IMG/VR virus record: IMGVR_UViG_3300024259_002152
Span: 248,001-312,000 of that record
Length of the DNA stretch: 64,000 nt
Strand: one strand, 5' to 3'
Shown here: positions 2,769-54,570 of the stretch, one piece after another
Layout of the letters: each line of letters opens with the position of its first letter
How positions within the stretch are numbered: position 1 is the stretch's first letter
Notes under the pieces: model-generated
What the model was told of the DNA's origin: nothing
What the model saw: only the letters and a program-made list of their open reading frames with translations
The model's database searches: none
Position numbers and translations under genes: made by a program

Positions 2769-2769
2769 A

Positions 2770-3078: not shown

Positions 3079-3079
3079 A

Positions 3080-7847: not shown

Positions 7848-7874
7848 TAATGATTTGAAAAGGAGAATTTGAAA

Positions 7875-8198: not shown

Positions 8199-8508
8199 GT
8201 ATCAATGGACACTAGAAAAAGCCAGAATTTTGATGGCACAAGAATTAGATATTCCACCTGATGATATTAATACTACGGCCATATATGATAGTATTTTTAG
8301 AGCGATCAGAGAATCTTGTGAAAGTGGTAAAGGAGAAATAGTTTTAACTCTTAAAAATAATGAAGAAGAAAGCGCTATTCTTAATGAAACAGGTGCAGAA
8401 ATTATTAATAGGATATTTAATGATCAACATCCTTTTAGTGACATAGCTCAAAATTATAAAGAATGGTATGTAAATTATGTCATGAATAAAATGGATGAAG
8501 GAGATTAA
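8191..8508 (+). CDS. hypothetical protein
   Basis: ORF with GAGG RBS overlapping trxA end. Confidence 0.7.
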   Translation: MDEYQWTLEKARILMAQELDIPPDDINTTAIYDSIFRAIRESCESGKGEIVLTLKNNEEESAILNETGAEIINRIFNDQHPFSDIAQNYKEWYVNYVMNKMDEGD

Positions 8509-11788: not shown

Positions 11789-12369
11789 GCAAAATAAGAA
11801 GAATAAATTTGTTTTCTGGAGCAGGCGGAGGAAAATCCATCACAGCAACCAATATTCGTGCTCAGTTGGGCTTTAAGGGTTATGATATAGAACTAGTAGA
11901 TGAGGTGATAAAAGATTGGACCTATATCCCTAGAATACCCAAAGATTGTGATAGTTTTTATTTGCAAGCGTCTCAGATTCAAAAAGAAGACATTAGATTA
12001 AGAGCAGGAGTGGATCTTATAGTAAGTGATTCTCCTTTGTTTTTGCAATATTTTTATGCATGGCATTATAAAACTCCTTTGCAGATGGCTATGCTGTCAG
12101 CAAGTATCGAGTTTGACGTGAGATATACTCCGCTAAATATTTTTATTAATCGCGAAGATGAATTTTATAATGAAACAGGTAGATATGAAACCTTAGAAGA
12201 AGCAAAACATATCGACATAGAAATAAAAAGACTCATGAGTAGGAATGCGGTTGAGTATAAAGAATTTTCTTGTTTAAATCAAGATGGGATAATCTATTAT
12301 ATAATATCAAAAATAAAAGAAGCAGATGAGCGAACTAATGGCAAATGGGTAACAAGTGAAAAAACGTAA
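11785..12369 (+). CDS. P-loop NTPase, NadR/AAA_28-like kinase
   Basis: INLFSGAGGGKS, IVSDSPL, GRYET. Confidence 0.75.
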   Translation: MSKIRRINLFSGAGGGKSITATNIRAQLGFKGYDIELVDEVIKDWTYIPRIPKDCDSFYLQASQIQKEDIRLRAGVDLIVSDSPLFLQYFYAWHYKTPLQMAMLSASIEFDVRYTPLNIFINREDEFYNETGRYETLEEAKHIDIEIKRLMSRNAVEYKEFSCLNQDGIIYYIISKIKEADERTNGKWVTSEKT

Positions 12370-13511
12370 TGTCAAAAATAGATATAATAGATAGTGAAAA
12401 ATTAAGAAAACAATTTCTACTACTACATGGAGATGCAAAGGATGTTCTGAAAGATCTTCCTGAGAATTTTGTTCATACGGTAGTGACTAGTCCTCCCTAT
12501 TGGCAATTAAGAGATTATTTTGCTAATGATCAGTTAGGTCAAGAGAGAACTCCTGAAGAATATGTGAAAAACTTAGTAGATATATGTAAAGAGATAAAAA
12601 GAGTTTTGAGGAAAGACGGCACGTTTTGGCTTAACATAGGAGATAGTTATAATAATAATTCAGGGTTTGAAAGAACAACTGATTGGAAAAGAAAAGGACG
12701 GTCGGGAGGTTCTTCTGATAAGAAAGCGTTCAAACATTCTTCTATTAAAATAAAAGATTTAGTAGGTATGCCATGGCGTGTAGCTTTTGCTTTGCAAAAT
12801 GATGGATGGTTTCTACGTTGTGATATAATTTGGCAAAAAACTAATCCTATGCCTGATGGAGCAAAGGACAGACCAACCAGAGGACATGAATATATATTTT
12901 TACTAACTAAATCTTCTAAATATTTTTATGATTACTATAGGGTATTAGAGGATACAGAAGAACAGCCAGAACAGATTCAGGGATTTGGGGCAAATGAGCA
13001 ACATGGCACTTATAGAATGGATCAGAATAGGACTTTTGAACATTATGGTAAGAGGAATAAAAGGTCAGTATGGAAAACATCTGTATCTACTTTTAAAGGT
13101 AAACATTTTGCCACCTATCCATTTCAACTTATAGAGCCTTGTATTATGGCATCCACATCTGATAAAGGGTGTTGTGTAGAATGTGGCACTCCTTGGTTTC
13201 GTAATTTTGAGAAAGAAAAAAAACCATCAGATAACCAAAAAGGATATACTTTAGAGTTGGTAGATAAAGGATGGGAACAAGGATGTGAATGTAATACTAA
13301 TGAAGTTAAACCATGTATTGTTCTAGATCCTTTTAACGGGTCAGGAACTACAGGAAACGTAGCGTTTAAATATGATCAACATTATATAGGCGTAGATACT
13401 AATAAGGAATATTTAGAAATTGCTAGAAACAATATTATAAGTAGTAAAAGAAATACTGAAGAGAATATTGTTGAAGCATCAACATTGGAGAGTTTTTTAG
13501 ATGATAATTGA
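12369..13511 (+). CDS. DNA N4/N6 methyltransferase, beta class
   Basis: TSPPYW, HFATYP, DPFNGSGTT; Cys-rich insertion. Confidence 0.92.
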   Translation: MSKIDIIDSEKLRKQFLLLHGDAKDVLKDLPENFVHTVVTSPPYWQLRDYFANDQLGQERTPEEYVKNLVDICKEIKRVLRKDGTFWLNIGDSYNNNSGFERTTDWKRKGRSGGSSDKKAFKHSSIKIKDLVGMPWRVAFALQNDGWFLRCDIIWQKTNPMPDGAKDRPTRGHEYIFLLTKSSKYFYDYYRVLEDTEEQPEQIQGFGANEQHGTYRMDQNRTFEHYGKRNKRSVWKTSVSTFKGKHFATYPFQLIEPCIMASTSDKGCCVECGTPWFRNFEKEKKPSDNQKGYTLELVDKGWEQGCECNTNEVKPCIVLDPFNGSGTTGNVAFKYDQHYIGVDTNKEYLEIARNNIISSKRNTEENIVEASTLESFLDDN

Positions 13512-15150: not shown

Positions 15151-16134
15151 ATGTCAAAAGATAACAGTTTTTTAAAGAACGGTAATTTTGCGCCAGGAAG
15201 ACTTTTTACAGGTTTAATCAAAGATATTCCAGATAAGAGAGACTATAAATTCTCTGATATCATGAAGCAGCAGGGAACTATAAAAACAATTAAGGTTAAA
15301 GTGTTAAAGCCAAAACCTTTAAAAAGAGGTTGTTTTAGAAAACATGGATATAAGATTCCTTTAGAAGAAGTGACAGTAGCAATCGATGTTGCTACTCCAA
15401 AACTGTTAAGCAGCTCTCCCTTTCAAATAGATCACTCTAAAAATATGTCTCTCGTAAAAGACCAGAAAAATTTAGGTACTTGCGTGGCATTTTCCGCAGC
15501 CGCGTTAAAAGAATGTCAGGAGAAAGAAGAGCATGATAGAGAGGTAGTATCTGGGAAAGAATATAACAGAGATAAAGAATATGATTATTCTGAACAATGG
15601 ATATATTGGAATTGTAAAAAGATAGATGGTTTTTCTGGGTCAGAAGGAACAACTATCAGAGACGCCATGAAAGTATTGAAGAATATTGGAGTTCCTACCG
15701 AACAAGCTTGGCCTTATACTGATGATCCTGTGAATATAGGAAAACCAGCAAGTTGGGCAAATATGATTGCTCGTTGGGCAACTATAGGGTCTTATTGGAA
15801 TGTCTCAAATTTAACAGAATTAAAAGCAGCATTAGTAGAAGGTCCTGTTATTATTGGTGTGCCTGTATTTGCAGAGTGGTGGGAACCTCCTGGTGGAGTG
15901 GTTAATTACCCATCTAATCCATCTTTAATGTATGGAGGGCATGCTATTTGTGCTGTGGGTTATGATGAAAGTAAACATTTGGTGAAGTTTAAGAATAGCT
16001 GGAGCACATATTGGGGAGAACAAGGGTATGGCTATTTGTCGTATAGATATATAGAGGATTTCTTATGGAGCGGATGGGCAGCAAGAGATATTTCTGTGAC
16101 AAGAGATATGTTAAAAGGAACAAGAGAGTTGTAA
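15151..16134 (+). CDS. papain-like (C1 family) cysteine peptidase
   Basis: DQKNLGTCVAF, GGHAICAVGY, KNSWSTYWGEQGY. Confidence 0.92.
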   Translation: MSKDNSFLKNGNFAPGRLFTGLIKDIPDKRDYKFSDIMKQQGTIKTIKVKVLKPKPLKRGCFRKHGYKIPLEEVTVAIDVATPKLLSSSPFQIDHSKNMSLVKDQKNLGTCVAFSAAALKECQEKEEHDREVVSGKEYNRDKEYDYSEQWIYWNCKKIDGFSGSEGTTIRDAMKVLKNIGVPTEQAWPYTDDPVNIGKPASWANMIARWATIGSYWNVSNLTELKAALVEGPVIIGVPVFAEWWEPPGGVVNYPSNPSLMYGGHAICAVGYDESKHLVKFKNSWSTYWGEQGYGYLSYRYIEDFLWSGWAARDISVTRDMLKGTREL

Positions 16135-16709: not shown

Positions 16710-17054
16710 GGGGTCGAAAGGTTTTCGATTAGATTAGGAGAAATCAACGGCGTGTACGAGATAGTAGTTGGCTCGTTAAAAATCTACTAAAAACTGTAAT
16801 TGGCAACAATTATGCAATGGCTGCCTAAGCAAAATTAGGTTGTCTATCTTCTGATTCCTATTAGGAAGAATAGGCAAAAGCAATAGGATAGCATAAACTC
16901 TTTTTCTCAAGAGAGGTGAAGCGAAATTAATTTGGGATAGAAATGATGAACCCTGTCAATTGGGGTCAGAGTTTTGAAATTTAAATAATTGACTACACAC
17001 GTAGAAGTTGATTTTGAAATATTCTAAGACTGGGCTTCGATGCCCACGACTCCA
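16710..17054 (+). ncRNA. ssrA: tmRNA; tag (A)GNNYAMAA
   Basis: Acceptor stem GGGGTCG/CGACTCC-A with G3:U70; T arm TGGGC-TTCGAT-GCCCA; pk1 CGAG/CTCG plus TAGTAG/CTACTA; tag ORF 16802-16828. Confidence 0.93.
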
Positions 17055-17102
17055 CTTTTAAAAAAACGCCTATCAAAAAGGCATATAATAAGATAGGACA
17101 TT

Positions 17103-17713: not shown

Positions 17714-18142
17714 ATGAAAAAAACTATATATGTATTGTTGTGTGTTTTATGTATATTTTTTTTGTCATCATGTGCATTGTTTACGTCATCATATAATAGA
17801 AATGATAATTCATGTATTTTATCTGCCACGAATGTGGCAATTCATGATTTCGCAATTTATGAAAACGAGATATTAGATAAATGTGCGGAGCAAGGAAATA
17901 AAGATTGTAAAAAGGGAGACAAAATTGAAGAGTGGCTTTTATTTTTAGAATCGATAGAAAAATACTTTGAAGAAGGTAAGTTGGACACTATTAATACTAT
18001 TGTAAATAATATTATCAAAGATATGAAGAGATATGAGGTAGATAGTAAAATAGTTACAGATATTGAGAATATTAAAGTTGTTTTAGACTTAAAGTGTGTA
18101 GAAGGTATTAAAAAGAAAACTGTTCGTCATGCTGGAAGGTAG
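17714..18142 (+). CDS. putative lipoprotein
   Basis: MKK + hydrophobic stretch + LSSC lipobox. Confidence 0.7.
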   Translation: MKKTIYVLLCVLCIFFLSSCALFTSSYNRNDNSCILSATNVAIHDFAIYENEILDKCAEQGNKDCKKGDKIEEWLLFLESIEKYFEEGKLDTINTIVNNIIKDMKRYEVDSKIVTDIENIKVVLDLKCVEGIKKKTVRHAGR

Positions 18143-18812: not shown

Positions 18813-19364
18813 ATGAATAAAACATACCTAACAGAGCCGCAGAGAAAACTGATAACAGATAATTATCGGTTATTAAGGCATTTTATAGGTCGATCAATTA
18901 AGAACAAAGTTGTTCCGAGATATCTAGAACATGAATTTATTAGTAAAATATTGCTTAAATTCTGTATTTCTGCCTTAAAGTTTGATGAAGAATTAGGATA
19001 TAAATTTTCTACTTATGCTTATAGGGGTTTTCAATTAGGTTTAAAGGATGTTCTATCTTATGAAAATACTAGATTTGGACAAATATGTTATTTAGAAGAT
19101 GTGGAGCAATATGAGATAGAATGTGAGAAAGTTGATGAACTAAGAGATGATTTTTTTTATGATTTTATTGATAATATAGATTTGGGTTCAAGAGATAAAT
19201 CTATTATGGAGGATTATTATTATGAGGGATTGTCATTTTCTAAGATAGGGCAGAAAAAGAATTTAACAGGGGAGGCAGTTCGATTGGTTGTTGATAGGTC
19301 TTTAAATAAAATTAGACATATGGTTCACAAAAGAAGATTAAATATGGAAGATTTTTATAAGTAG
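18813..19364 (+). CDS. RNA polymerase sigma factor (sigma70 family)
   Basis: Region 2 KFDEELGYKFSTYAY; region 4 EGLSFSKIG...LTGEAVR. Confidence 0.88.
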   Translation: MNKTYLTEPQRKLITDNYRLLRHFIGRSIKNKVVPRYLEHEFISKILLKFCISALKFDEELGYKFSTYAYRGFQLGLKDVLSYENTRFGQICYLEDVEQYEIECEKVDELRDDFFYDFIDNIDLGSRDKSIMEDYYYEGLSFSKIGQKKNLTGEAVRLVVDRSLNKIRHMVHKRRLNMEDFYK

Positions 19365-19371
19365 GAATAAT

Positions 19372-19947
19372 ATGATGAAGCAAAGGGTAGTTAAATCGGA
19401 GAAATTAACTAATAATAAATGGATTAATTTATTTAAGGTCCAATATATTAACTCTAAAGAGAAAGTATGTAATTGGGTTTTCGCGTCTCGAAAAAAAGAT
19501 CCTTTCACAGATAAAAAAATAGACGCGGTAGTTCTGGTTGTCACTGTTGATACTCCTAAAGGTCGAATGCTTGTAGTGATAAAAGAATACCGAGCACCTC
19601 TTGCAGATTATGAGTATGGTTTCCCTGCTGGTCTGATAGATCCAGGAATGACAATAGCAGAAACAGTTAAAAAAGAATTAAAGGAAGAAACAGGGCTAGA
19701 TTTAGTTAGGATTATAGGAGAGAGCGGTCCAGTTTATTCTTCTGCTGGATTGTCCGATGAAGCGGTTACTATGGTATTTGTTGAAGCAGAAGGAGAAATG
19801 AATACAGATCATCAAGAAGATACTGAAGATATAGAAGTATTCCTTTATGATATAAATGATATTAGTGATTTACTAACATCTGATAAAAAAATAGGAGCCA
19901 AAGCTTGGGGAGTTTTATACTATTACTCTCAGATTGGGAAAATATAA
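19372..19947 (+). CDS. NUDIX hydrolase (ADP-ribose pyrophosphatase-like)
   Basis: FPAGLIDPG...KELKEETGL, YSSAGLSDE, EDIEV. Confidence 0.88.
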   Translation: MMKQRVVKSEKLTNNKWINLFKVQYINSKEKVCNWVFASRKKDPFTDKKIDAVVLVVTVDTPKGRMLVVIKEYRAPLADYEYGFPAGLIDPGMTIAETVKKELKEETGLDLVRIIGESGPVYSSAGLSDEAVTMVFVEAEGEMNTDHQEDTEDIEVFLYDINDISDLLTSDKKIGAKAWGVLYYYSQIGKI

Positions 19948-19952
19948 ATATT

Positions 19953-20621
19953 ATGGTTGAAGGGCAAGAATCAAGTGAAACTAAATTTACTTTTGAAGAG
20001 GTAAGGAGTCATTTATACAAGCAAGCTATTAAAGTGCATAAACGATTTTACGGAAGATATGAAATTAATGAGTTGGTTAATGAGGTGTGGGTCAAAGGAA
20101 GTATTCAAGAATTAGAAAATATAAAATATGTTTCTGCGAGAGCATATTATGATATGATTGATTATATTAGAGTGATAGAAGGTAAATGTATGACATATAA
20201 AGGTATGTCATATCGTGCTCCGAGGGCAAAAAATAATATGCATTCTAGCACAATAGATATTGGCACGCAGCAGCTTGATATTTTCTATGGATATGGAAGT
20301 CATGATCGTGATTTTTTTGATCGTCAAGAAGATACTAAGAGAAGCTATATTGATTATGTTGATGATAAAGACGAAGTAGAATATATATTATCTCATCTTT
20401 CTGAACAGCATTTAGATTTTATAAAAAAGCATTTCTTCGAAGGGTTAACTTTAAAAGAAATTGCTAAACAATTTCAAATAGCAAAACGAACAGCATGGGG
20501 TAGGCGTCATAAAATTTTAAAGAATATAAGAATGGAGCGTATGTCAATATTTCTAAGAGCAAAATATTTAAGAGAATATAGAAAAAGAAAGAGAGATTCA
20601 AATGCCTACCTATCAATATAA
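19953..20621 (+). CDS. divergent sigma factor-like protein
   Basis: RAYYDMIDYIR (region 2-like); FEGLTLKEIA HTH (region 4). Confidence 0.72.
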   Translation: MVEGQESSETKFTFEEVRSHLYKQAIKVHKRFYGRYEINELVNEVWVKGSIQELENIKYVSARAYYDMIDYIRVIEGKCMTYKGMSYRAPRAKNNMHSSTIDIGTQQLDIFYGYGSHDRDFFDRQEDTKRSYIDYVDDKDEVEYILSHLSEQHLDFIKKHFFEGLTLKEIAKQFQIAKRTAWGRRHKILKNIRMERMSIFLRAKYLREYRKRKRDSNAYLSI

Positions 20622-20868
20622 ATGCTCAGCTTGTGATTATGAGTTTGAACTTATGCAAAGCATAATAGATTCTGCTAAAAAGAAGTGTCCAACGTGTGGC
20701 AAAATGAAACTTAAAAGATTAATAGGTGCGGGTTCAGCAGTTATTTTTAAAGGTTCAGGTTTTCATTGCAATGATTATAAATCTGACAATTATAAACAAA
20801 GCGTTGAAAAGAAACCTGTTTTTAGCAATAAAACAATTAAAAAAGGTCCTGCCAAAACACAAATCTAA
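20602..20868 (+). CDS. FmdB-family zinc-ribbon protein
   Basis: MPTYQYKCSAC..FE..QSI, CPTCG, FKGSGF..NDY. Confidence 0.9.
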   Translation: MPTYQYKCSACDYEFELMQSIIDSAKKKCPTCGKMKLKRLIGAGSAVIFKGSGFHCNDYKSDNYKQSVEKKPVFSNKTIKKGPAKTQI

Positions 20869-20961: not shown

Positions 20962-20989
20962 TTGAAAGTGAAAGTGCTAATTATATAAT
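20962..20989 (+). promoter_or_regulatory. sigma70-type promoter, GTGAAA class
   Basis: TTGAAA-GTGAAAGTGCTAATTA-TATAAT. Confidence 0.75.
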
Positions 20990-21043
20990 TGTAGTCAGTT
21001 GTTAGAGTTTCAATTTATTACTTTTTTTATGGAGATCCGAAAG

Positions 21044-21718
21044 ATGAAGAACTGGAAGAAAATTACACTAGCGGTTATTGTTGCTGTGGCATTTATGTTT
21101 GCCTCAGTCGGAGAGTTGGCGGCCAGGGGGGGTAGAAGTGGTGGTGGAGGGGGTTTCAGAAGTAGTGGTAGGTCAAGATCTACAACAAGGTCAACAAGAT
21201 CAACAAGATCAACACGAAAAGCACCATCGAAAAAGTCGGCCAGTAAGGCCAGAACAAAAGCTGCTCCAAAAAGGACAGCAGCACAACAAAAATCTTATGA
21301 AGCAGCTAAGAAGAATGGCACAGCTTTTAAAAGTAAAGCAGACGCCACTAAGGCATTCAAAACAAAGAATGCAAAACAATATACTTCTAAGTATGCTGCT
21401 AAGCCTGCAACACGACCTTCTCATATCCCTCAGACAACATCGGTAAATGGTAAAAATGTTAATGTAACATATAATGTTTCACATGGAGGGTATGGATATA
21501 TGAATCCTATGGGTACATGGATGATGTATGATGCTATGACTGATGCTATTATGCTATCTGCCCTTATGAGTCGCAACAACTATCATTATGATACTATTGC
21601 TCCAGTAGGTCATAATGGAGTTCATCATCGCACTTCTGCTTTTACCTACCTTGGATTGGCACTCGTTGCTGTGGTTGTTATTCTTATCTTTGTTGCAATT
21701 TTCAAACGTGGAGTATGA
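21044..21718 (+). CDS. exported/membrane protein with Gly/Arg/Ser-rich basic region
   Basis: Signal peptide, RGGRSGGGGG and STR repeats (9-bp TCAACAAGA units), C-terminal TM helix. Confidence 0.75.
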   Translation: MKNWKKITLAVIVAVAFMFASVGELAARGGRSGGGGGFRSSGRSRSTTRSTRSTRSTRKAPSKKSASKARTKAAPKRTAAQQKSYEAAKKNGTAFKSKADATKAFKTKNAKQYTSKYAAKPATRPSHIPQTTSVNGKNVNVTYNVSHGGYGYMNPMGTWMMYDAMTDAIMLSALMSRNNYHYDTIAPVGHNGVHHRTSAFTYLGLALVAVVVILIFVAIFKRGV

Positions 21719-21721
21719 TTA

Positions 21722-22435
21722 ATGAGAACCACAGATAAAACTACATTAGCTTATTGGGAACAAATTCAGAGAGGAGATTTAATTCAACTCTCTGACGAAC
21801 AGACTATTGCTGATCTGATGGAAGATGGTTGTCAAAATATAGAGCATGGTGCAGATTTTGAGGTAACAAGAATACGGAAGATATCTGCTCAACAAGGTTC
21901 TGCTCGTTGGCTTATATTTGATATATCTCTTTCTAGTTTTCAGTGGGTTGTAGTTGTAAAATCTGTAGGTGTGGGTCTTGATGTCAAAGTTTGTTATACT
22001 CCTGATGATTTTAATGATGGTAGTCGTCAGGATATGATGGATAACGATTGTCTCTGGCTTTTTGAAAATCGTGACAATATCGATAGTTCTACACTCTCCG
22101 AACTTACTTTTGCTTCTTGTATTGAAGAAGGAGAAGATACCATTTATAGTACAAATGGGTCAGAGTTTGGAGAGTGTAGAGAATATGATGAAAAGTCATT
22201 TGCTACCATTACTGAATATCTTACAGAATCTGATGTAGAAAATCCTGAGTTGATAATTCTTGAGTTTAATAATATTGAAGAATGGTCTAATTCAGAAGAA
22301 CAAGAAGATGAAGATGATTTTGAAGAGATATCGGTAGAACATTCATCTGGTGTCACGATAGACGAAGAAAATAGTTTTATTACTTTTCTTCAGGGGTGTA
22401 GAGTGGATCTGAATGATATCAAATTGTTAAAGTAA
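21722..22435 (+). CDS. hypothetical acidic protein (possibly DUF4178/YjfK-like)
   Basis: Acidic beta-rich sequence; position in yjfI/pspA cluster. Confidence 0.55.
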   Translation: MRTTDKTTLAYWEQIQRGDLIQLSDEQTIADLMEDGCQNIEHGADFEVTRIRKISAQQGSARWLIFDISLSSFQWVVVVKSVGVGLDVKVCYTPDDFNDGSRQDMMDNDCLWLFENRDNIDSSTLSELTFASCIEEGEDTIYSTNGSEFGECREYDEKSFATITEYLTESDVENPELIILEFNNIEEWSNSEEQEDEDDFEEISVEHSSGVTIDEENSFITFLQGCRVDLNDIKLLK

Positions 22436-22482
22436 AGTGTTTTAGGATAATATTAAAAATTAATAGTTTTAGGAGTAATGTT

Positions 22483-22935
22483 GTGAATGATATTAAAAGT
22501 ATAGTAGATGTAGAGCGTATTCTTGCAGAACAGGGATATAAGGTTCAAATGAATGAAAACAGTGTTACTATTTCTGTGGGAAGTGATGCTGCTCCTTTTC
22601 CATGTCTTATTCTGATGGATGAGACTGACCTAACTGTTGTTTGTGAGGTTATGACATATGGGCAATTGATGGAGAGAATTGCTCCTGATATGAGAGAAGA
22701 TTTTTACATGACTCTCTTGGACATGAACTCTCAGACTAAGCCATACTCTTTTTCTATTCTGAGTGATATAGATGGGGAGGGAGATGAGAGAGATCAATGG
22801 CCGCTCGTGTTGATTAATAGCATTCCCGTTGGGGATATTTCTCAAGACGAATTACTTGCGGCTATGAGAGGTTTGAGTGCGGCTTTGCTAACAGCGAAGA
22901 ATATATTCGATGTAAGCCTTGTCGAATCTTTATGA
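22483..22935 (+). CDS. YjfI (DUF2170)-like protein
   Basis: LLDMN...PYSFSI segment, size, adjacency to pspA. Confidence 0.55.
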   Translation: MNDIKSIVDVERILAEQGYKVQMNENSVTISVGSDAAPFPCLILMDETDLTVVCEVMTYGQLMERIAPDMREDFYMTLLDMNSQTKPYSFSILSDIDGEGDERDQWPLVLINSIPVGDISQDELLAAMRGLSAALLTAKNIFDVSLVESL

Positions 22936-23011
22936 GATAGAGAAGATAATAAGTTAGTATTTAACTATTGTCTCAATTGCTAAACAATAATAAATTTTAA
23001 GTTAGGAGTAT

Positions 23012-23689
23012 ATGATTATGGCAAGTTTTTGGAAGATGTTCAAAAATAGTGTTAGAGAGAAGAAGGATAAAGCTGCTGAAAAAATGGCAGATCCGATTCG
23101 GGATGGCAAATTTGCTATCGAAGATTCTAAAGGAAAATTGGCAGATATACAAGGTAAGATTGCTACATATTCTGCACAGATCAAGAAGAATCAACGTGAT
23201 TATGATGCCGAGGTGGCAGAGGTTAGGAAATGGGGGAATCTTGCTAAAAAAGCAGCAGAAGCGAGTAATGAAGAAGACGTGCGTAAATGCATTACTCTTA
23301 AAACTCAGGCTCAGCAACGTGCCGATAATCTTAAGAAAATGATCACTCAAGATGAAGGCATGCTTAACAGTATGAAGAGTCAGTGGCAGACAAAGAACAA
23401 TCAAGTTAGTCAGGCTGAAAGTAATCATTCTCAGCTAGCAGTTCGCAAACAAATGGCCGAAGCGAGAAAAGAATTTGCCAAATCTTCTCAAGGTCTCGAC
23501 TCGGACAGTTGTTTTTCAGAATTGGACAAGCTTCAACAGTCGGTAGAAGCTGATGAGTGCGAGGCAGAGGCATATGAAGAAATGGCACCTACGAATGACC
23601 TCGAAGATATGTCAAGTAAGTATGGAGCTTCAGGCGATTCGGCTGTGGATGATGAAGTAGCCAAAATGATGGCTAATGCTAAAAAGTAG
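23012..23689 (+). CDS. pspA: PspA/IM30 family protein
   Basis: N-terminal amphipathic helix, ADP, long coiled coil, W..LAKKA....NE. Confidence 0.88.
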   Translation: MIMASFWKMFKNSVREKKDKAAEKMADPIRDGKFAIEDSKGKLADIQGKIATYSAQIKKNQRDYDAEVAEVRKWGNLAKKAAEASNEEDVRKCITLKTQAQQRADNLKKMITQDEGMLNSMKSQWQTKNNQVSQAESNHSQLAVRKQMAEARKEFAKSSQGLDSDSCFSELDKLQQSVEADECEAEAYEEMAPTNDLEDMSSKYGASGDSAVDDEVAKMMANAKK

Positions 23690-23714
23690 TTAATAAACTT
23701 TTAGCTATGATTGG

Positions 23715-23770
23715 AACTTCCTATGATGTATTGTGGATTGTTGTTCACCTACTCATAGGAAGTTTTTCTT
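23715..23770 (+). terminator. long hairpin / terminator between pspA and channel gene
   Basis: AACTTCCTATGA (23715-26) / TCATAGGAAGTT (23753-64) + T run. Confidence 0.55.
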
Positions 23771-23781
23771 TAAAGAGGATA

Positions 23782-24867
23782 ATGATGAAAAATATATTAA
23801 TATTTTTAGTTTTGCTTATGATCTGCAAATTCTCTTACTCGGAGAGCATATATAAAACCACTCAAATTTATGTCTCTGATATGAAGCCCTGTGTTATTGT
23901 CGAGGAGTCAGAAGATAGTCATATTCCTGTTTCTATTTCTGGTTTTGAAATAGATTTAGGAAATGAAGTTGCAAAAGACCTCATAGCACAAGACATAATT
24001 AAAGATTGGGAATTTGTTCCTATATCATGGCATAAACTAGAAGAGAATATAAAAAACGGCAATGCAGATATGGCTTGTGCTGGATTTACGATACGTTCTA
24101 AAAGAATGGACTGGGCAGATTTCTCTGTGCCTACTATGAATTCTGGTTTAGGAATAATGGTATTAAAAAATCCAGAAAAGAATTCTATATTATGTAAATT
24201 AAAAGTTCTCTATGAAGCCCTTATAATGCCCATAACCTTATTCGGATTGTTTTTGCTAGCTTTTTCTCATTTTATATGGTTGGCAGAAAAGAAAAATCCT
24301 GGGATTAATGACCACTATTTTCCAGGGATTTTTGAGTCAATATATTTTTGTATAGTTACATGTTCTACAGTTGGTTATGGAGATTATACTCCTAAAAGAT
24401 GGACAACCAAAATAGTAACAATAGCACTTATATTTTGTGGTATTATTGCTTTTTGTAATTTCACAGCTTTACTTTCTGCCGATTATACTACTGAGAAAAT
24501 TACAGGAGATATTAGATCTCCAGAGGATCTAAAAGGTAAGATTGTCCTAACTCAAAAAGGGACAACAAGTGATGATTATGCAAAAGGGTTAGGGGCTTCT
24601 AAAGTTAAGAAAGTTGATAATATAGATACCGCTTGCGACTATTTATTGCTTGGAAGAGGGGATGCTGTAGTATTTGATCATCCAGTTCTACTTAATTATG
24701 TAAAAGAGAATCCCGATAAGGTTGAATTAGTAGATGGTATTTTCGATGAACAATATTATGGGTTTGTGTTTCCTAAAGGAAGTCCTTTGAAAAGAGCAGT
24801 TGATAAATCCATCCTTAAATTATATGAAGATGGGACTTATAAACGACTTTATCAAAAGTGGTTCTAA
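23782..24867 (+). CDS. GluR0-like ligand-gated K+ channel
   Basis: Signal peptide; SGFEIDL and TIRSKR..WADFS.P (S1); TM-pore TVGYGD-TM; S2 with YGFVFPKGSPL; AGAGGA RBS. Confidence 0.9.
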   Translation: MMKNILIFLVLLMICKFSYSESIYKTTQIYVSDMKPCVIVEESEDSHIPVSISGFEIDLGNEVAKDLIAQDIIKDWEFVPISWHKLEENIKNGNADMACAGFTIRSKRMDWADFSVPTMNSGLGIMVLKNPEKNSILCKLKVLYEALIMPITLFGLFLLAFSHFIWLAEKKNPGINDHYFPGIFESIYFCIVTCSTVGYGDYTPKRWTTKIVTIALIFCGIIAFCNFTALLSADYTTEKITGDIRSPEDLKGKIVLTQKGTTSDDYAKGLGASKVKKVDNIDTACDYLLLGRGDAVVFDHPVLLNYVKENPDKVELVDGIFDEQYYGFVFPKGSPLKRAVDKSILKLYEDGTYKRLYQKWF

Positions 24868-24874: not shown

Positions 24875-24902
24875 TTGAAAGTGAAAGTATTTGCCCTATA
24901 AT
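24875..24902 (+). promoter_or_regulatory. sigma70-type promoter, GTGAAA class
   Basis: TTGAAA-GTGAAAGTATTTGCCC-TATAAT. Confidence 0.75.
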
Positions 24903-26824: not shown

Positions 26825-27415
26825 ATGCAAAAGCTAGATTTTGTGAAAGAAATCCTTTTTGACGAAGAAACTGTTACGAAACGTATAAATGAAATTCGTG
26901 GTGAAATTTTATCTTATTACAAAGAAATAAAAAAACCTATATATGTTTTTTCTGTTTTGAAAGGTGGTAGATATTTCTCAAATCTTTTATTTCCCTCAGG
27001 TTTACCACAGAATAGAAGATGGATAATGCGTTATATTTCCGCGAGCAGTTATCGTAATAATGAGAAATTACCTAACAATGAAATAAAAATAGATCTGATG
27101 GGCGTTGGAATTAAGTGTTTATGGGGTGCCCATGCGTTAATTATCGATGATATATATGATACAGGTAATACTCTTAATGAGATTATTGCTCAATTTTGGA
27201 GGAATGGAGCAACTGTCAATAGTGTGGTGTTAATCAAAAGGACAGGACATCATAAGTTTGTTATTCCAATGTTATCATATGGTTTTGAAGTAACAAGTAA
27301 AGATTATTTAGTTGGTTGCGGTTTGGACTATAATGGTGGTTATCGCCAGATACCCTACATAGCCAGTATTAAGGAGATAAAAGATGCCGATAGAATTCCC
27401 AATAACAGTCAATAA
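26825..27415 (+). CDS. hpt: hypoxanthine-guanine phosphoribosyltransferase
   Basis: VLKGG, ASSY, LIIDDIYDTGNT, VGCGLDY...YR. Confidence 0.9.
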   Translation: MQKLDFVKEILFDEETVTKRINEIRGEILSYYKEIKKPIYVFSVLKGGRYFSNLLFPSGLPQNRRWIMRYISASSYRNNEKLPNNEIKIDLMGVGIKCLWGAHALIIDDIYDTGNTLNEIIAQFWRNGATVNSVVLIKRTGHHKFVIPMLSYGFEVTSKDYLVGCGLDYNGGYRQIPYIASIKEIKDADRIPNNSQ

Positions 27416-28319: not shown

Positions 28320-29261
28320 ATGGAAAAACAAATAGGATATAAAGACATTTTCCTAAAGCCTCAAAAATGTATTGTTGATAGTCGTATTTTATGCGATACT
28401 TCTGTTAAGTTAGGAAAACAGAAGTTTGATATGCCAGTGATAGCGTCTAATATGAAAAGCGTTGTAAATATTGAAACTTGTAAATTTTTTGCTAGGAATA
28501 ATTGGTTTTATATAATGCATCGTTTTGGAATTAACAGTATTGATTTTATTTTAGAAATGGATAGTGAGGGTTTATTTACCTCTATAAGCATAGGTATTAA
28601 TGATGATTCCTATAAAGAACTAGAGAGAATATATCAAGAAGGTTTATCCATCGATTATATAACAATTGATGTTGCGAATGCATGGTCGGACAAAACTCAT
28701 AGAATGGTTGATTTTATTAAAACAAAATTTCCTGAAATATTTTTAATTGTTGGAAATATAGCTACTTCTGAAGCTATAAAGGAAATACAAACATGGAATA
28801 TTGATGCGGCCAAGATTGGGATTGCTGGAGGAAAAGTTTGCCTTACAAAAAATAAGACGGGTATTCATCGAGGTATGATTAACACCATTTTAGATTGTTG
28901 TCAAGTAGCTGGCGTTCCTATCATAGCAGACGGAGGAATAGTAGAGCATGGAGATGTAGCAAAATCTTTGGCGTGCGGAGCGAGAATGGTAATGGCTGGT
29001 TCTCTTTTTTCGGGTTATGACCAGTCGGCGGGGAACATAATAGAGATAGAAGACAGAATGTATAAAGAGTATTATGGAAGTGCTTCTAAATATAATAAGA
29101 ATGAATATAAAAATGTAGAAGGTAAAAAAATATTGATTGATTATAAAGGGGATATGAATAAATTGCTTATTGAGCTTAAGGAGGACCTACAAAGCTCTAT
29201 TTCCTATACCGGAGGCAATTGCTTAAAAGATTTGAATGGTACTGAATGTTATGTAGTTTAA
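28320..29261 (+). CDS. guaC: GMP reductase
   Basis: SNMKSV, YIMHRF, KIGIAGGKVCLTK, IIADGGI, YYGSAS, VEGK, LQSSISY. Confidence 0.92.
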   Translation: MEKQIGYKDIFLKPQKCIVDSRILCDTSVKLGKQKFDMPVIASNMKSVVNIETCKFFARNNWFYIMHRFGINSIDFILEMDSEGLFTSISIGINDDSYKELERIYQEGLSIDYITIDVANAWSDKTHRMVDFIKTKFPEIFLIVGNIATSEAIKEIQTWNIDAAKIGIAGGKVCLTKNKTGIHRGMINTILDCCQVAGVPIIADGGIVEHGDVAKSLACGARMVMAGSLFSGYDQSAGNIIEIEDRMYKEYYGSASKYNKNEYKNVEGKKILIDYKGDMNKLLIELKEDLQSSISYTGGNCLKDLNGTECYVV

Positions 29262-29867: not shown

Positions 29868-30141
29868 ATCTCTTTATGCTAGGGTTGTTATCCCAAAGGG
29901 AGATTACTGTTACAAGTTAAAGAAAGTAGTTTATAGTAAAGAGCTTGAACTACCTATTTTTAAAGTTAGAAAATGTCCCTACTGGTGTTGGGATAAAAGA
30001 TATCCATCGGAGGATGTTGGGTATTGTAAATATCTTGGAGAGGGAGATAGGGATGATGGAGGGGGTGGTCTTTTATTTGACCAAATTAAAGAATGTGAGA
30101 TAAACCACTTTAAAGAAGGCGAGTCAGATTGTTATGAGTGA
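29824..30141 (+). CDS. hypothetical Cys-containing protein
   Basis: IPKGDYCY, CPYW, LLFDQIKEC. Confidence 0.7.
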   Translation: MLLKRAIEHLKKKSKSLYARVVIPKGDYCYKLKKVVYSKELELPIFKVRKCPYWCWDKRYPSEDVGYCKYLGEGDRDDGGGGLLFDQIKECEINHFKEGESDCYE

Positions 30142-31084
30142 AATTTTTGATAACGATGGAATGATTGATAGTGTATGGAATGTTTGTAATTTATTTGTGG
30201 GTGAAGGTATTAGCACTCATGTCACTTTGAATGAGTCGGCTATAAAAACAATAGCAAATAATATAGAACATGAGTTGAGTAATAAGAAAGATTATTGGTG
30301 GGGTTATCCTAAGTCTTTCGAAAAAATTAATAATGATGTTCCTTACAAAATACTATATTATGAATTGTTAGCTAGCGCTGTTAACTATCAATACTGGTAT
30401 GGTAAGCACGATATAAGACCTAACGGTGCTTGTGCTAATAAAATGTATAAGATACTTGACGATTCTGTAACTTTTATAGTAGATGAAGTTGATCCTACTT
30501 CTGGTCAAGATTTTGCCGAAGACATTACTAAGATGTTTATTCTTAATTTGTCATTAGCAAGGCTCCCTAATACAGAAAATAGAATAAAACACATAAAAGA
30601 AGTGTCCGCTTTGGTTCAAGAGCATGGTATGGATACGATTAGGCATCTTTCAGATAAAGTATCTCAGAACGATATGGGTATAGAGGAATTTCTTAATATA
30701 ATTGTTTCTAAATTGCCAGGATTTGCAGATGATCTATTTTTGAAAAGAGCTTTTCTTCTGCCTATTATGTTGTATAGAAGATTACAATGGTTCAAAGATG
30801 ATATACACACTGTCCCTGTTCCTGCTGACTACCAGATACCCAAAGTATTGGAAGATTTGGGATGCATTAGTTATAGCTACCTTCTTTCAGAGAAAATACA
30901 GGCGGGAGAATTACTACCTGCTGGCTCTTTAGAAGAGTGTGAGCTTAGGGCAGCTACGGTTATAACGTGTGCAAAATTGGCTGAATTTTCTGGTTGTAAA
31001 ATGTGTGACATAGATACTTTTCTATGGTTAAAAAGTAAAGAAATTGATAGACCATTTCATCTTACTATGACTACAAATTACTAG
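30134..31084 (+). CDS. queuosine salvage protein (Q_salvage/DUF2419, QNG1-like)
   Basis: KRAFL, ADYQIPKVL..LG, E.ELRAA, D.FLW, HLT.T..Y. Confidence 0.85.
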   Translation: MSEIFDNDGMIDSVWNVCNLFVGEGISTHVTLNESAIKTIANNIEHELSNKKDYWWGYPKSFEKINNDVPYKILYYELLASAVNYQYWYGKHDIRPNGACANKMYKILDDSVTFIVDEVDPTSGQDFAEDITKMFILNLSLARLPNTENRIKHIKEVSALVQEHGMDTIRHLSDKVSQNDMGIEEFLNIIVSKLPGFADDLFLKRAFLLPIMLYRRLQWFKDDIHTVPVPADYQIPKVLEDLGCISYSYLLSEKIQAGELLPAGSLEECELRAATVITCAKLAEFSGCKMCDIDTFLWLKSKEIDRPFHLTMTTNY

Positions 31085-33584: not shown

Positions 33585-35180
33585 GTGAGTAAAAAACGAA
33601 GACATTTTTCCGATATCATAGGAATCGACGCTTTTAACGTAATAATAGAAAAAGCTATTAACTCATCAAAAAGGAATAATATGAAAAACGGTCCCGTCAC
33701 TTCTCCAGTAAAATATGGTCAAAACGGAAATGTATCAATACAATCGAAAGTCTCTAAAGATACAGACTTTCTGGATGATTTTCCCGAAGATGCTCAACCA
33801 GAAGTTTGTTCGGACTCTTGCGGGTATGGGGTCAGTCAAGAAGAAAAAGATAGACGATTGGATGAAAATTTAGCAAAGGTTAAATTTGCAGATCAAATTA
33901 AAATAGATTTCATTCCTTCTATTGATTATAGAATACTTTGTAGATTTCTAGGTGTTACTACTGTCAATGAGATAACAAATCATCCTTTTCAATCTCAACC
34001 TCTTATTACTCTTATATTGATGGAGAGTATCGATGGGTTCATGAGACAAGAGGGATATGATATGGTTGGAGAATTGAATTTCGATGATCATGGTAATTCT
34101 ATCCCTCCCGAAAAAAATCCCTGGAACATTAAAGGCAAAGAAACAACTTTTACTATCACTGGTTTTTTATTCTTCGAAAAAATAAAGGGCCAAAAAACAG
34201 ATAATGTTGCTTTCTTTTTGTTCGCGGATTTGGAAAGAGGAGGAGCCTCTATTACCTGCTACAGTACTGATACCAATAAGTCTAAAGATATTGTTAAAGA
34301 CCTACAACAATATGCAAAGAAGAATAACTGTTTAAGAGGAGCTAAACTCAAAGATGTGAATATGATTACAGCGTCATTTTCAGAAGTAGATATAGTCGAA
34401 GATTTTACATGGAACAATTATTACTATTCAGATGAGATCAAAGACCTGTTCCAATTAGAGGTATTTGATTTTATCACTAATGTGGAAAAATATAACGAAT
34501 GTGGTATTAATAAAAGAGGTATCATTCTGCATGGCAGACCAGGATGTGGAAAAACAACTATTGGTAATATTATTTGCAACATGACTCCCAAAAACACGGT
34601 AATCTGGATTACTCCTGAAATATTGTCAGAGAATAATTATAGAGCCATGTCTTCCATAAAAGCTCTTTATAAATTGGCAGATTTCCTTTCTCCTTGTATT
34701 ATTATGTTGGAAGATTTAGATCTATTTAGTCAGGATAGAGATATGGGTGGAGATGTGCTGTCTTTGGGGGCGTTGATGAATATTCTTGATGGTGTTAATA
34801 CTATATCAAATTCCGTTACTATTGGCACTACTAATAGGTTAAAATCGATTGAAACTGCTCTGAGAAATAGACCTGGGAGATTTGATAGAATAGTTGAAAT
34901 AGAATCTCTTTCTACGGAGCTTAGAATTAAAATGCTCAAAGAAAGATTAGATGAATGGAAAGTTTCTCAGGCAACTCTAGATTATATTGTTGGTCAAACT
35001 AAAGATTGGACTGGAGCAGAGGTGCAAGAATTTATTAATAGTTTGAATCTAAAACATATAAGTAGTAAGAGAAAAATCAGGAAGATGGACCAGGCATGGG
35101 CAGAAGAAATTATAGCAACTCTTAGTAATTTTGGAGTGGGAGACGCTAGCTCTGGTTTTGGTTTTAGCAAAAAAGATTAA
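33585..35180 (+). CDS. AAA+ ATPase
   Basis: GRPGCGKT, MLEDLD, TTN, NRPGRFDR. Confidence 0.9.
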   Translation: MSKKRRHFSDIIGIDAFNVIIEKAINSSKRNNMKNGPVTSPVKYGQNGNVSIQSKVSKDTDFLDDFPEDAQPEVCSDSCGYGVSQEEKDRRLDENLAKVKFADQIKIDFIPSIDYRILCRFLGVTTVNEITNHPFQSQPLITLILMESIDGFMRQEGYDMVGELNFDDHGNSIPPEKNPWNIKGKETTFTITGFLFFEKIKGQKTDNVAFFLFADLERGGASITCYSTDTNKSKDIVKDLQQYAKKNNCLRGAKLKDVNMITASFSEVDIVEDFTWNNYYYSDEIKDLFQLEVFDFITNVEKYNECGINKRGIILHGRPGCGKTTIGNIICNMTPKNTVIWITPEILSENNYRAMSSIKALYKLADFLSPCIIMLEDLDLFSQDRDMGGDVLSLGALMNILDGVNTISNSVTIGTTNRLKSIETALRNRPGRFDRIVEIESLSTELRIKMLKERLDEWKVSQATLDYIVGQTKDWTGAEVQEFINSLNLKHISSKRKIRKMDQAWAEEIIATLSNFGVGDASSGFGFSKKD

Positions 35181-35231
35181 AGTTTAAAAGTGAAAATGAC
35201 GATATAACATATGGGTGTTATATTTATACTC

Positions 35232-35386: not shown

Positions 35387-37114
35387 ATGGCTAAGTATGC
35401 AAATCATGTAGCGAATCCAAAGACTTCACAAACAAAGAAGGCAAAGAGTACTCAGGTAAAAGGCAGAGCGGGTGGGTATGTTTTCAAGGTCGATGACTGG
35501 ACAAGGCTGAACCGTTTCCTAATCATTGGTAGTGAGAAGGGTTCTTACTATGCCTCTGATCGTGAGTTGACTATGGAGAATTACGACTGCATCCTGAATT
35601 GTTTGAAGTTGGATGCAAAGCGTACTGTCGATACTATTGTAGAGATTAGTGATCAGGGTCGTGCCATTAAGAATGATCCAGCTATCTTTGCATTGGCGGT
35701 ATGCAGTGTTCATGGCGACGAAAAGACCAAAGCATATGCTAATCTAGTTATGCCTAAGGTTGCTCGTTTCTCTACTGCTTTCTTCTCATGGGTTGATTCT
35801 ATCAACACATTGAAGGAAGGTCGTAAGGGTAAGGGTCTGTTAAGAGCCATTGGAAGATGGTATACAGAAAAAGATGCTGTGAAGTTGGCATACCAGATTT
35901 GTAAGTACCCAGGTCGTTCAATAGGTGGCCAAAGATGGACTCACGGGGACGTTTTGCGTCTTGCAAGGATCTCTCCATCTAAGGATGGCAGACCTTCTAG
36001 AAATGGTAGGGCACTAACGATTCCTTCAGAGGACCATGCTACTGTTTTTCATTACGCAACACATGGTATCACAACTGCTGCGACTCTTGCTCAAAGAGAA
36101 AAAGATGCTAAAGCTACTGGTAAGACCCAGGAAGCTCCTGGTATCTCTGTAAAGCAGTATAAAGCTTTGAAGGATAGTAAGCTTAAGTATATCTGGGCAC
36201 ATGAGCAATGTAAGGTTGCGACTAAGAATAGTGAAGTAGTTTCATTAATTAAAAACTACAATCTTACAAGAGAATCTGTCCCTCCACAGTTTAGAAATGA
36301 ATTGTTGGTGCAAAAGGCCCTGCTGCCAGGGATGCCTATGACTGCTTTGATCCGAAATTTGGGAAGCATGACTTCTTCAGGTCTTTTGAAGCCATTGGCT
36401 GATGAGACTTCATTAGTAATCGACAAGATTACAAATGAGGAAATACTGAAGAAGAGTCGTATTCATCCTATGACACTTATGCTGGCATTGAAGACTTACA
36501 GCAGTGGTAGTGGCATGAGGACTACTTGGAAGCCTGTAGGAGCTATCAAAGATGCTATGGAAGATGCTTTCTACAAAGCGTTCAACTATGTTGAGCCAAC
36601 TGGAAAGAAATTTCTTTACGGTATTGATGTTAGTGGTTCTATGGGTTGGTCAGAAGTTAATGGTATGCAAGCACGCGAAGCTGCCGCAGTCGTAGCAATG
36701 ACGTGTGCAAGAACCGAGAAGAACTATGATCTTATGGCTTTTGGTCATGCATTCGTGCCACTTAACATTACCGCTAAGGATAGTTTGGATACTGTGGTTA
36801 GACGAACTGCTAATTTGAATTTTGGCGGAACTGATTGTGCATTACCTATGAAGTATGCAATGAAAAATGGTCTGGATGTTGATGTGTTTGTTGTTCTAAC
36901 GGACAGCGAGACATGGTTTGGTGATATTCATCCATTTGAAGCATTGAAGCAGTATCGCAAGAAGTTCAATAAGAACGCCAAGCTTGCCGTGTTGGCATTT
37001 ACAAGCAATGGCTTTACAATAGCCGACCCAAGCGATGCGGGAATGATGGATATTGTTGGTTTGGATTCTAATGTGCCGAAGGTATTATCTGAATTCGCGG
37101 CAAATAGACTTTAA
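35387..37114 (+). CDS. Ro60/TROVE-domain RNA-binding protein (Rsr-like)
   Basis: AGGYVF..DDW.RL.RFL..GSE.G.YY, MPMTALIRNLG.MT, RIHP, vWA MIDAS DVSGSM, GGTDCALPM, TDSETW. Confidence 0.95.
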   Translation: MAKYANHVANPKTSQTKKAKSTQVKGRAGGYVFKVDDWTRLNRFLIIGSEKGSYYASDRELTMENYDCILNCLKLDAKRTVDTIVEISDQGRAIKNDPAIFALAVCSVHGDEKTKAYANLVMPKVARFSTAFFSWVDSINTLKEGRKGKGLLRAIGRWYTEKDAVKLAYQICKYPGRSIGGQRWTHGDVLRLARISPSKDGRPSRNGRALTIPSEDHATVFHYATHGITTAATLAQREKDAKATGKTQEAPGISVKQYKALKDSKLKYIWAHEQCKVATKNSEVVSLIKNYNLTRESVPPQFRNELLVQKALLPGMPMTALIRNLGSMTSSGLLKPLADETSLVIDKITNEEILKKSRIHPMTLMLALKTYSSGSGMRTTWKPVGAIKDAMEDAFYKAFNYVEPTGKKFLYGIDVSGSMGWSEVNGMQAREAAAVVAMTCARTEKNYDLMAFGHAFVPLNITAKDSLDTVVRRTANLNFGGTDCALPMKYAMKNGLDVDVFVVLTDSETWFGDIHPFEALKQYRKKFNKNAKLAVLAFTSNGFTIADPSDAGMMDIVGLDSNVPKVLSEFAANRL

Positions 37115-54523: not shown

Positions 54524-54570
54524 TGATTAGTAGTCGTAACTCACAATATTTTTTTGAAAGGTTTGGTATC

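Follow-up and report, generated by a model that had tools for sequence, protein, structure and literature searches.

The question raised by the locus described here is why a tailed huge phage should carry genes with which bacteria look after their inner membrane. The locus lies in the IMG/VR virus record IMGVR_UViG_3300024259_002152, a single-contig record (label G000), within a stretch of 64,000 nucleotides, positions 248,001–312,000 of that record, which was analyzed as a whole and is called the window below. Positions are those of the window unless another record is named. Five plus-strand genes, g1 to g5, fill positions 21044–24867, and g4 encodes PspA. The reading favored here, with a probability of about 60%, is that they form a phage-carried copy of a bacterial PspA-centered envelope-maintenance operon, which would keep the inner membrane of the infected host sealed and energized.

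PspA was named after phage stress, and its use by the phages themselves is only now coming to notice. The locus is a compact and well-bounded five-gene unit with clear bacterial counterparts and a predicted ligand-gated K+ channel, and a natural “Rosetta-stone” fusion of g1 to g2 ties two uncharacterized proteins together. It makes three questions testable in laboratory strains: whether YjfI/CesT-like proteins are adaptors of PspA, what the role of DUF4178/YjfK-like proteins is, and whether large phages maintain the membrane potential of their hosts.

The five genes and their promoters

An initial annotation, made from the letters of the window and its open reading frames (ORFs), had described a phage-borne unit of five co-oriented genes bounded by two GTGAAA-class promoters and encoding a basic exported protein, an acidic protein, a YjfI-like protein, PspA and a K+ channel, and had likened this unit to the bacterial yjfI-yjfJ-yjfK-yjfL-yjfM-yjfC cluster. 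The layout was borne out, with all the genes on the plus strand, intergenic gaps of 3, 47, 76, and 92 nt, an AGGAG-type ribosome-binding site before each of the five starts and an exact promoter motif on either side.

The PspA assignment of g4 (23012–23689; 225 aa, PspA/IM30, ESCRT-III-like) was upheld over nearly the full length of the protein. It matched Pfam PF04012 with an E value of 2e-17 and 63.9 bits (cut-off 33.9) across profile positions 5–218 of 220, the match was confirmed on the genomic DNA, and no other PspA is encoded in the G000 record. The NCBIfam PspA and LiaH models matched only under their equivalog cut-offs. In a sequence alignment, residues 15–221 of g4 were paired with residues 12–215 of solved Vipp1/PspA chains (8qbw, 6zvr; E 2e-8), and the predicted architecture is an ESCRT-III-like helical hairpin comparable to that of the solved PspA and Vipp1 proteins. 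The N-terminus reads MASFWKMFKNSV and continues with a charged stretch and ADP; a hydrophobic-moment scan of this region for an amphipathic helix was not decisive.

Directly upstream of g4 lies g3 (22483–22935), which encodes a 150-aa acidic protein with a predicted chaperone-like fold of the CesT/Tir-YbjN-YjfI type. The two genes thereby have the order of the CesT/Tir–PspA dyad, and their adjacency is kept in all the phage and bacterial loci that have both. The AlphaFold2 model of g3, built with 18 homologues, reached a mean predicted local distance difference test (pLDDT) of 84 and shows the helix (H) and strand (E) order H-E-E-E-H-H-E-E-H. Among 550,129 Swiss-Prot models its best fold match was E. 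coli YjfI (template-modeling (TM) scores 0.72/0.80, E 7e-6); YbjN, Rv0487 and chaperones of type III secretion ranked next, and the fold matches in the Protein Data Bank (PDB) included YbjN, DR_1245, CesT, ExsC and the DUF2170 protein PA14_16140. The DUF2170 model (PF09938) was unmatched by the g3 protein at E ≤ 0.1 and by the whole record at E ≤ 10. The description of g3 as YjfI-like is thus retained for the fold and not for the Pfam family. A predicted complex of two g3 chains with g4 scored 0.45, with 0.32 for the best control, a result that is not evidence either way.

The acidic protein of the initial annotation is g2 (21722–22435; 237 aa, pI 4.05), which is rich in beta strands, predicted to be cytoplasmic and, by its predicted fold, identified further as similar to YjfK (DUF2491) and DUF4178 proteins. 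The best Swiss-Prot fold match of its AlphaFold2 model (pLDDT 84) was E. coli YjfK (E 4e-5, TM 0.48/0.51), followed by Rv2597, a DUF4178 protein, and by aq_1347. Fold matches in the ESM Atlas were to DUF4178 (TM 0.55/0.68) and DUF2491 (TM 0.59/0.61), and a PDB fold search returned no solved structure of this fold. Neither g2 nor its bacterial orthologues matched the Pfam models for DUF2491 (PF10679) or DUF4178 (PF13785), and one of 53 representatives of the g2 family gave a weak DUF4178 match (E 0.0044). With a cut-off of E ≤ 1e-3, a profile search with g2 retrieved 513 cluster representatives (clusters at 50% identity), and a feature search of the ESM Atlas gave no usable lead. Three families of this locus, those of g1, g2, and g3, are missed by the current Pfam, NCBIfam and PHROG models, that of g2 alone with more than 500 cluster representatives. 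Taken together, the predicted folds relate g2 and g3 to Yjf families, at the level of fold, as the initial annotation had proposed for the neighbors of PspA.

The first gene, g1 (21044–21718), encodes a 224-aa membrane protein that has the features expected of the basic exported protein first described: its pI is 10.95, a signal or anchor segment lies at the N-terminus and a transmembrane segment at the C-terminus. Its start was placed at the ATG at 21044, after GGAG; the TTG at 20999 given in the ORF list was set aside because it lies only ten bases past the -10 hexamer. A low-complexity tract, encoded with a 9-bp repeat at 21183–21214, is rich in Gly, Ser, Arg, and Lys, and a block reading KPATRPSHIPQ ... 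GGYGY ... MYDAM is strongly conserved in the family, for which a word search gave 58 matches. No significant relation to YjfM/DUF1190 was found by hhalign with the single E. coli YjfM sequence, and the ESM Atlas feature search retrieved only unnamed clusters, among them one Bacteroidota cluster at 0.92.

Natural fusions of g1 to g2 were found in about 25 of the 150 listed cluster representatives of the g2 family. Because of these fusions the two proteins are regarded as one unit, and the fusions show that they act as such. The topology also follows from them, with the C-terminus of g1 and the whole of g2 predicted on the cytoplasmic side. Two fusions were inspected in their genomic context, and both stand in operons of the module type. 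The order is DUF350, fusion, a g3-sized gene and PspA in one of them, and GluR0-like channel, a 183-aa gene, DUF350, fusion and a g3-sized gene in the other (L028).

The K+ channel was confirmed in g5 (23782–24867; 361 aa) and its type could be refined: judged from its sequence, it is a GluR0-type ligand-gated K+ channel rather than a plain K+ channel. The start at ATG 23782, after AGAGGA, was preferred to that of the longest ORF, which begins at 23707, and agrees with a 362-aa homologue in the related contig L002. The Pfam families SBP_bac_3, Ion_trans_2, Lig_chan and Lig_chan-Glu_bd were matched; in the longest ORF (386 aa), SBP_bac_3 covers residues 76–386 and is broken by Ion_trans_2 (206–256) and Lig_chan (175–278). 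The predicted order is signal peptide, S1 lobe, M1, P-loop, M2 and S2 lobe, the only two hydrophobic segments besides the signal peptide flank the P-loop, and the K+ selectivity filter TxGYGD is present as TVGYGD. The best PDB match was 2pyy, a bacterial ionotropic glutamate receptor (iGluR) ligand-binding core, and AMPA receptors aligned across the pore region. In iGluRs and related binding proteins an Arg contacts the alpha-carboxylate of the ligand and an acidic residue its alpha-amino group. The alignment of g5 to 2pyy shows conservation of the DAVVFD motif and of the Arg within TIRSKR. This gene is the sole one with an Ion_trans_2 domain in the record.

The promoter upstream of the module (20962–20989, plus strand) consists of the 14-mer TTGAAAGTGAAAGT, 8 nt and TATAAT, equivalent to TTGAAA-N16-TATAAT if read as a sigma-70 type. 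A second one of the same class (24875–24902, plus strand) starts the transcription unit that follows and delimits the module at its 3' end, and no plus-strand site resembling an intrinsic terminator was found inside the module. Exact copies of the 14-mer, with TATAAT 8 nt on, occur at 20962, 24875, and 18754. When up to two mismatches were allowed, the whole record held 29 copies of the motif on the plus strand and 0 on the minus strand, with about 7.6 per strand expected from Markov-1 simulations, and a TATAAT-like hexamer (at least 5 of 6 positions) was correctly spaced in 18 of the 29. The copies in the window include those at 1474, 9111, 18754, 20962, 24875, and 39518. The motif directly follows g5 in the related contigs L002, L007, and L008, and an exact copy precedes g1 in L008 only. 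The bare GTGAAA hexamer, by which the promoters had been classed initially, was not enriched (47 found, 50 expected); therefore only the longer motif, the 14-mer with its -10 hexamer, is regarded as real, and this part of the description was replaced. The resemblance to sigma-70 promoters suggests transcription by the host RNA polymerase, possibly early. The conserved GTGAAAGT part of the motif sits in the spacer and could be a site for a regulator.

Occurrence in huge phages and in bacteria

The G000 record is linear, 350,866 bp long and 73% complete according to CheckV. It was assigned to a tailed huge phage on a Phage_tube_2 tail-tube gene at 34,473–35,213 of the record, its IMG/VR and CheckV classification, its near-single-strand layout and its strand-specific promoter motif; the same tail-tube family was found by model search in the records G001 and G003. 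Nearly all ORFs of at least 100 aa in the window lie on the plus strand, its GC content is about 33% throughout, with the module included, and its genes are of kinds usual for very large phages (Ro60/TROVE, T4-type RNA ligase, DNA methyltransferases, sigma-factor-like proteins, helicase and AAA ATPase). Close IMG/VR relatives are 297,710 bp (L007) and 547,943 bp long (L008, rated 100% complete), and the complete relatives span 461–548 kb, some with terminal repeats. The stretch is present, partly or wholly, in contigs from seawater or marine DNA runs, at least 24 in number, and the phage is therefore a marine one; RNA runs were absent from the listing.

It is extremely unlikely that the module is no phage feature and that the contig is a cellular fragment, or a chimera of a bacterial operon with viral DNA. 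Such an origin would agree with the linear, roughly 73% complete state of G000 and with the Terminase_6N and Terminase_6C models, which found no match in G000, G001, or G003, complete relatives included, nor, for Terminase_6N alone, in G002. It is opposed by the virus record with its tail-tube gene, by the almost uniform strand of the genes and the genome-wide, strand-specific motif that flanks the module too, by the GC content that the module shares with the rest of the window, and by the seawater runs with contigs of the same stretch. Moreover, three other contigs, including one with a completeness rating of 100%, have the module at the same site between the same neighbors. The locus was thus found on a viral genome, with complete relatives that have terminal repeats, and not on a cellular chromosome, in agreement with its initial description as phage-borne.

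The distribution in viral databases, which had been proposed as a check, was then followed. All five genes, in the same order, were found in L002 (43 kb), L007, and L008 with 45–82% identity, PspA being the best conserved among them (73–82%). The upstream NUDIX, sigma-like and zinc-ribbon neighbors and shared downstream genes are kept in related phages. Six more IMG/VR contigs (52–461 kb, GC 34–53%; three complete, two with terminal repeats) have g1-g2-(g3)-PspA with or without a GluR0-like channel, so that the module or its core was detected in at least nine other viral contigs in total. In the phage G003 (460,978 bp), which lacks DUF350, the GluR0-like channel shows 38% identity over its full length to that of the G000 clade. 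In the phages G004 and G005 a doubled DUF350 gene stands next to g1. The complete huge phage L023 (IMGVR_UViG_3300000976_000008, 408,349 bp) has the order doubled DUF350, g1, g2, g3 and PspA. No DNA match to the module and no similar PspA were obtained among GenBank phages, in which the channel was matched only partially (S2 lobe).

In bacteria, the order g1-g2-g3-PspA was found in Pirellulaceae, in a metagenome-assembled genome (MAG) of Spartobacteria and in one of Gracilibacteria, with 26–51% identity to the phage proteins. A Kv-like Ion_trans channel follows PspA in the Pirellulaceae locus, and in Spirochaetia MAGs g1-g2 are accompanied by a divergently transcribed channel gene. A gene with two DUF350 domains (an 8-TM protein, with eight transmembrane segments) lies just upstream of g1 in each bacterial locus checked (L003, L004, L009, L016, L017, and L018), and DUF350 is also present in L028 and L029. 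Neither DUF350 nor glutathionylspermidine synthase (GSP_synth) was found anywhere in the G000 record, which extends to the whole record what the initial annotation had said of the locus, and DUF350 was not found in the 547,943-bp, 100%-complete relative. Gracilibacteria had been considered as the host on the hint of a GC content of 31% and the common module. This candidate is unsupported: Gracilibacteria read TGA as Gly, whereas the phage has open ORFs with translation table 11.

For g1, g2, and g4, small trees were computed on fragments of tblastn high-scoring segment pairs, with rows under 100 aa excluded. The G000 clade was joined with G003 with supports of 83/86 (g2) and 91/91 (g4), and the phage G004 was placed with Pirellulaceae in the trees of g1, g2, and g4 (83/91, 93/91, and 99/99). 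The g1, g2, and PspA of L023 grouped with Pirellulaceae in all three trees, which points to a planctomycete as host and to a separate capture of the module by this phage. From these groupings it follows that the phage copies do not all derive from one capture.

The distribution of the channel bears on the proposal that the module serves host take-over or superinfection exclusion, in which the K+ channel would depolarize the cell in a controlled way while PspA and its partners limit collateral damage. Opening of the channel would alter membrane potential and turgor and thereby keep out the DNA of competing phages or reprogram transport. The chlorovirus Kcv channel offers an analogue for take-over driven by a channel. 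Two divergent phage clades, that of G000 and G003, have a channel with the module, at the 38% identity given above, and the channel type varies, GluR0-like in the phages and Kv-like in Pirellulaceae, yet the linkage persists, which suggests that ion flux is central. However, L023–L025, L018, and L019 have PspA with g1–g3 and no adjacent channel, the best conserved protein among close relatives is PspA and not the channel, and neither virion association nor an early-injection signal is known. We consider this use of the module unlikely.

As a separate observation, a GluR0-like channel (L028, 2359–3441) was found on a short metagenome contig (JGI 3300001419), in an operon with DUF350 and a g1::g2 fusion. 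The pairing of this type of channel with the module is therefore not confined to the G000 phage clade.

Proposed membrane maintenance, its alternatives and the surrounding genes

The gene identities, the folds, the operon structure, the conservation in phages and bacteria and the g1-g2 fusions come from the present analysis. In the favored reading, that of a phage-carried envelope-maintenance operon, we infer the physical interactions, the gating by a ligand, the time at which the genes are expressed and the advantage that the phage gains. The exported polycationic domain and anchor of g1, together with the cytoplasmic g2, would make one transmembrane unit that reports or marks the state of the envelope. 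The g3 protein, as an adaptor of the CesT/YjfI type, would hold PspA or deliver it to this unit, and PspA would polymerize on the inner face of the stressed membrane and stop the leakage of ions. An amino acid in the periplasm would gate the GluR0-type channel, which would adjust the K+ flux and hence the membrane potential and turgor. Expressed from a sigma-70-like phage promoter, the operon could keep the membrane energized through the long infection required by a genome of about 480–550 kb.

Several results weigh against this reading. No pairwise similarity was found by BLASTP between g4 and E. coli YjfJ. Alignment with hhalign gave nothing for the g3 alignment with the single E. coli YjfI (probability 0.15) nor for g2 with the single E. 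coli YjfK, although single-sequence targets are weak ones and these negatives do not outweigh the fold matches. The fold match of g2 is only moderate (TM about 0.5–0.6). No Pfam, PHROG, or NCBIfam family was assigned to g1, g2, and g3 or to their bacterial orthologues. Since g1–g3 lie outside the family models and the hhalign comparisons were empty, the links of g2 and g3 to the Yjf proteins rest on predicted folds and gene context. Additionally, the G000 clade is without the DUF350 gene that accompanies every bacterial locus checked, and a module without DUF350 may work differently or may depend on a DUF350 protein of the host.

A bolder version of the envelope-maintenance reading, which seems doubtful to us, would make the g1-g2 pair an unnamed transmembrane partner of PspA, composed of a polycationic sensor domain outside, an anchor in the membrane and a DUF4178-like domain in the cytoplasm. 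With the CesT-like adaptor and the amino-acid-gated K+ channel, it would form a self-contained circuit for sensing and repairing leaks, captured repeatedly by several lineages of huge phages, whose hosts would then stay energized for as long as the replication of genomes of about half a megabase takes. Glutamate that leaks from the cytoplasm, for example, could act as the signal that opens the channel, and PspA would meanwhile close the leak.

The alignment of g4 over its full length with solved Vipp1 assemblies could also point to the shaping or budding of internal membranes or vesicles by PspA, for a replication or assembly compartment of this very large phage. PspA and Vipp1 remodel and fuse membranes in vitro (work cited in PMC10948618 and in the preprint 10.64898/2026.10.24.761521). 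Such a compartment is very unlikely here: no other membrane-compartment genes were seen beside the module, the operon was taken whole from bacteria without such a compartment, and the CesT-like adaptor, the DUF4178-like protein and the channel fit envelope-stress operons (PMC11237479).

The same components as in the envelope-maintenance reading could serve in counter-defence, with PspA plugging lesions and the channel resetting the potential when abortive-infection effectors depolarize the membrane, as the initial annotation had suggested; the phage could then finish its cycle in hosts that have pore-forming defense systems. PspA is a classic responder to the loss of proton-motive force (background in PMC10948618), and the window is rich in anti-restriction-type genes, including several DNA methyltransferases, as befits a phage that invests against the defenses of its host. 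Nothing, however, ties the module to any defense system, and the same operon is common among free-living bacteria, where it is of a housekeeping, envelope-related type. Counter-defence would moreover be a special case of membrane maintenance, with no separate mechanism, and as an explanation of its own it appears rather unlikely.

Regarding the surrounding genes, the region upstream of the module on the plus strand encodes two sigma-70 region 4 proteins and an FmdB-type zinc-ribbon protein (18813–19364, 19905–20621, and 20602–20868), with a NUDIX hydrolase at 19372–19947. Downstream, also on the plus strand, are a phosphoribosyltransferase, a protein of the IMPDH/GMP-reductase family and a queuosine salvage protein (26825–27415, 28320–29261, and 30134–31084).

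All other features described here lie on the plus strand as well. The phage invests heavily in DNA modification, with two DNA methyltransferases of the N6/N4 kind, a methylase of the Eco57I type and a DndB-like protein (12369–13511, 47126–48193, 50812–51999, and 54520–55854). At 35387–37114 and 38281–39492 lie genes for a vWA-domain Ro60/TROVE protein and for an RNA ligase of the T4 Rnl1 type, and no Y-RNA-like family reached the Rfam threshold. A full-length tmRNA gene was detected at 16710–17057 (Rfam RF00023, 124.7 bits, gathering score 47); ARAGORN reported no tRNA or tmRNA, though Rfam finds this tmRNA. A putative lipoprotein with a signal segment ending in LSSC (17714–18142) is followed by a protein with a prepilin-type N-terminal methylation motif (PF07963; 18129–18686). 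The mature start of the latter resembles DUF1559-type pseudopilins, which occur commonly in Planctomycetota and other PVC bacteria, and this resemblance may hint at the host. Adjacent 109-aa ORFs at 2749–3707 (starts at 2749, 3059, and 3378) and 7869–8508 (7869 and 8179), with one more at 17360, are possibly tandem paralogues, and the phage has a gene for a cysteine protease of the papain family (Peptidase_C1) at 15151–16134.

Comparison with known systems

The initial annotation had taken the bacterial yjf cluster as the counterpart of the locus. With the E. coli yjfI-yjfJ-yjfK-yjfL-yjfM-yjfC cluster the module shares a predicted YjfI-like fold (g3), a PspA-family protein (g4), a predicted YjfK-like fold (g2) and a linked K+ channel. 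It differs from that cluster in gene order, in having no DUF350, DUF1190, or ATP-grasp/GSP synthetase gene and in showing no detectable sequence similarity to YjfI, YjfJ, and YjfK; furthermore, the ligand-binding domain of g5 is predicted to be extracellular, whereas that of the E. coli-type channel is intracellular. The kinship proposed with the yjf cluster therefore holds for related folds, PspA and the K+ channel, and the closest class is another one.

The CesT/Tir-PspA dyad and its operon classes were defined by Ravi et al. (2024; PMC11237479), who regarded YjfI/DUF2170 as CesT-like. Their group 2 comprises the 8-transmembrane (8-TM) YjfL/DUF350 protein, the Ctha_1186 lipoprotein, DUF4178, CesT/Tir, PspA and a 7TM-spermidine synthase, and group 3, the E. 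coli type, a 4-TM DUF350 protein, DUF1190, DUF2491, an ATP-grasp ligase and often a K+ channel. Among known systems, group 2 comes nearer to the module than the E. coli yjfIJKLMC cluster does. Both the module and group 2 have an exported or lipoprotein-like membrane protein, a beta-rich DUF4178-like protein of the cytoplasm, a CesT-like protein encoded immediately before pspA, and PspA itself, and a doubled DUF350 gene precedes the sequence relatives of g1–g4 in Pirellulaceae, Spartobacteria and metagenome contigs. Unlike group 2, the G000 clade has no DUF350, a GluR0-type channel is attached, and g1–g3 are not covered by the Pfam models. The precomputed Pfam lists of L003–L005, L028, and L029 contain no spermidine synthase, for which no systematic search was made. 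The module is thus the core of group 2 combined with the channel theme of the E. coli-type class.

GluR0 of Synechocystis conducts K+ and aids the response to a KCl upshock (PMC13099474). The order S1-M1-P-M2-S2, the TVGYGD filter, the ligand-contacting Arg (TIRSKR) and DAVVFD are common to g5 and to GluR0 and the prokaryotic iGluR K+ channels; g5 differs in being encoded by a phage, in an operon with PspA.

In the bac cluster of P. aeruginosa, an interaction between BacA (YjfI family, DUF2170) and the PspA-like BacB has been cited as unpublished (PMC10948618). There too a gene for a CesT-fold protein lies directly upstream of a PspA-like gene, and the fold matches that g3 has in the PDB include the BacA structure 8q8o (TM 0.61–0.67). 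The bac cluster has other partners and a proposed sigma-54-type regulation, and BacA belongs to the Pfam family DUF2170 while g3 does not.

Phage-borne PspA has been reported in a preprint by Yuan and Chen (24 October 2026; 10.64898/2026.10.24.761521), who count 189 pspA genes in 184 huge phages plus 667 IMG/VR genomes of up to 548 kb and note that huge-phage pspA is often next to membrane proteins. Large phages and membrane-protein neighbors are likewise found here, and the upper size of that IMG/VR set equals the size of L008. The main cases there are human-gut phages with Ca2+-ATPase or SPFH neighbors, whereas G000 is marine, and Yjf-like partners, the g1 family with its fusions, the GluR0 identity of the channel and the bacterial operon counterpart are not described in the text consulted. 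Therefore, both phage-borne PspA and bacterial CesT–PspA operons have already been described, and the present module is a variant of both.

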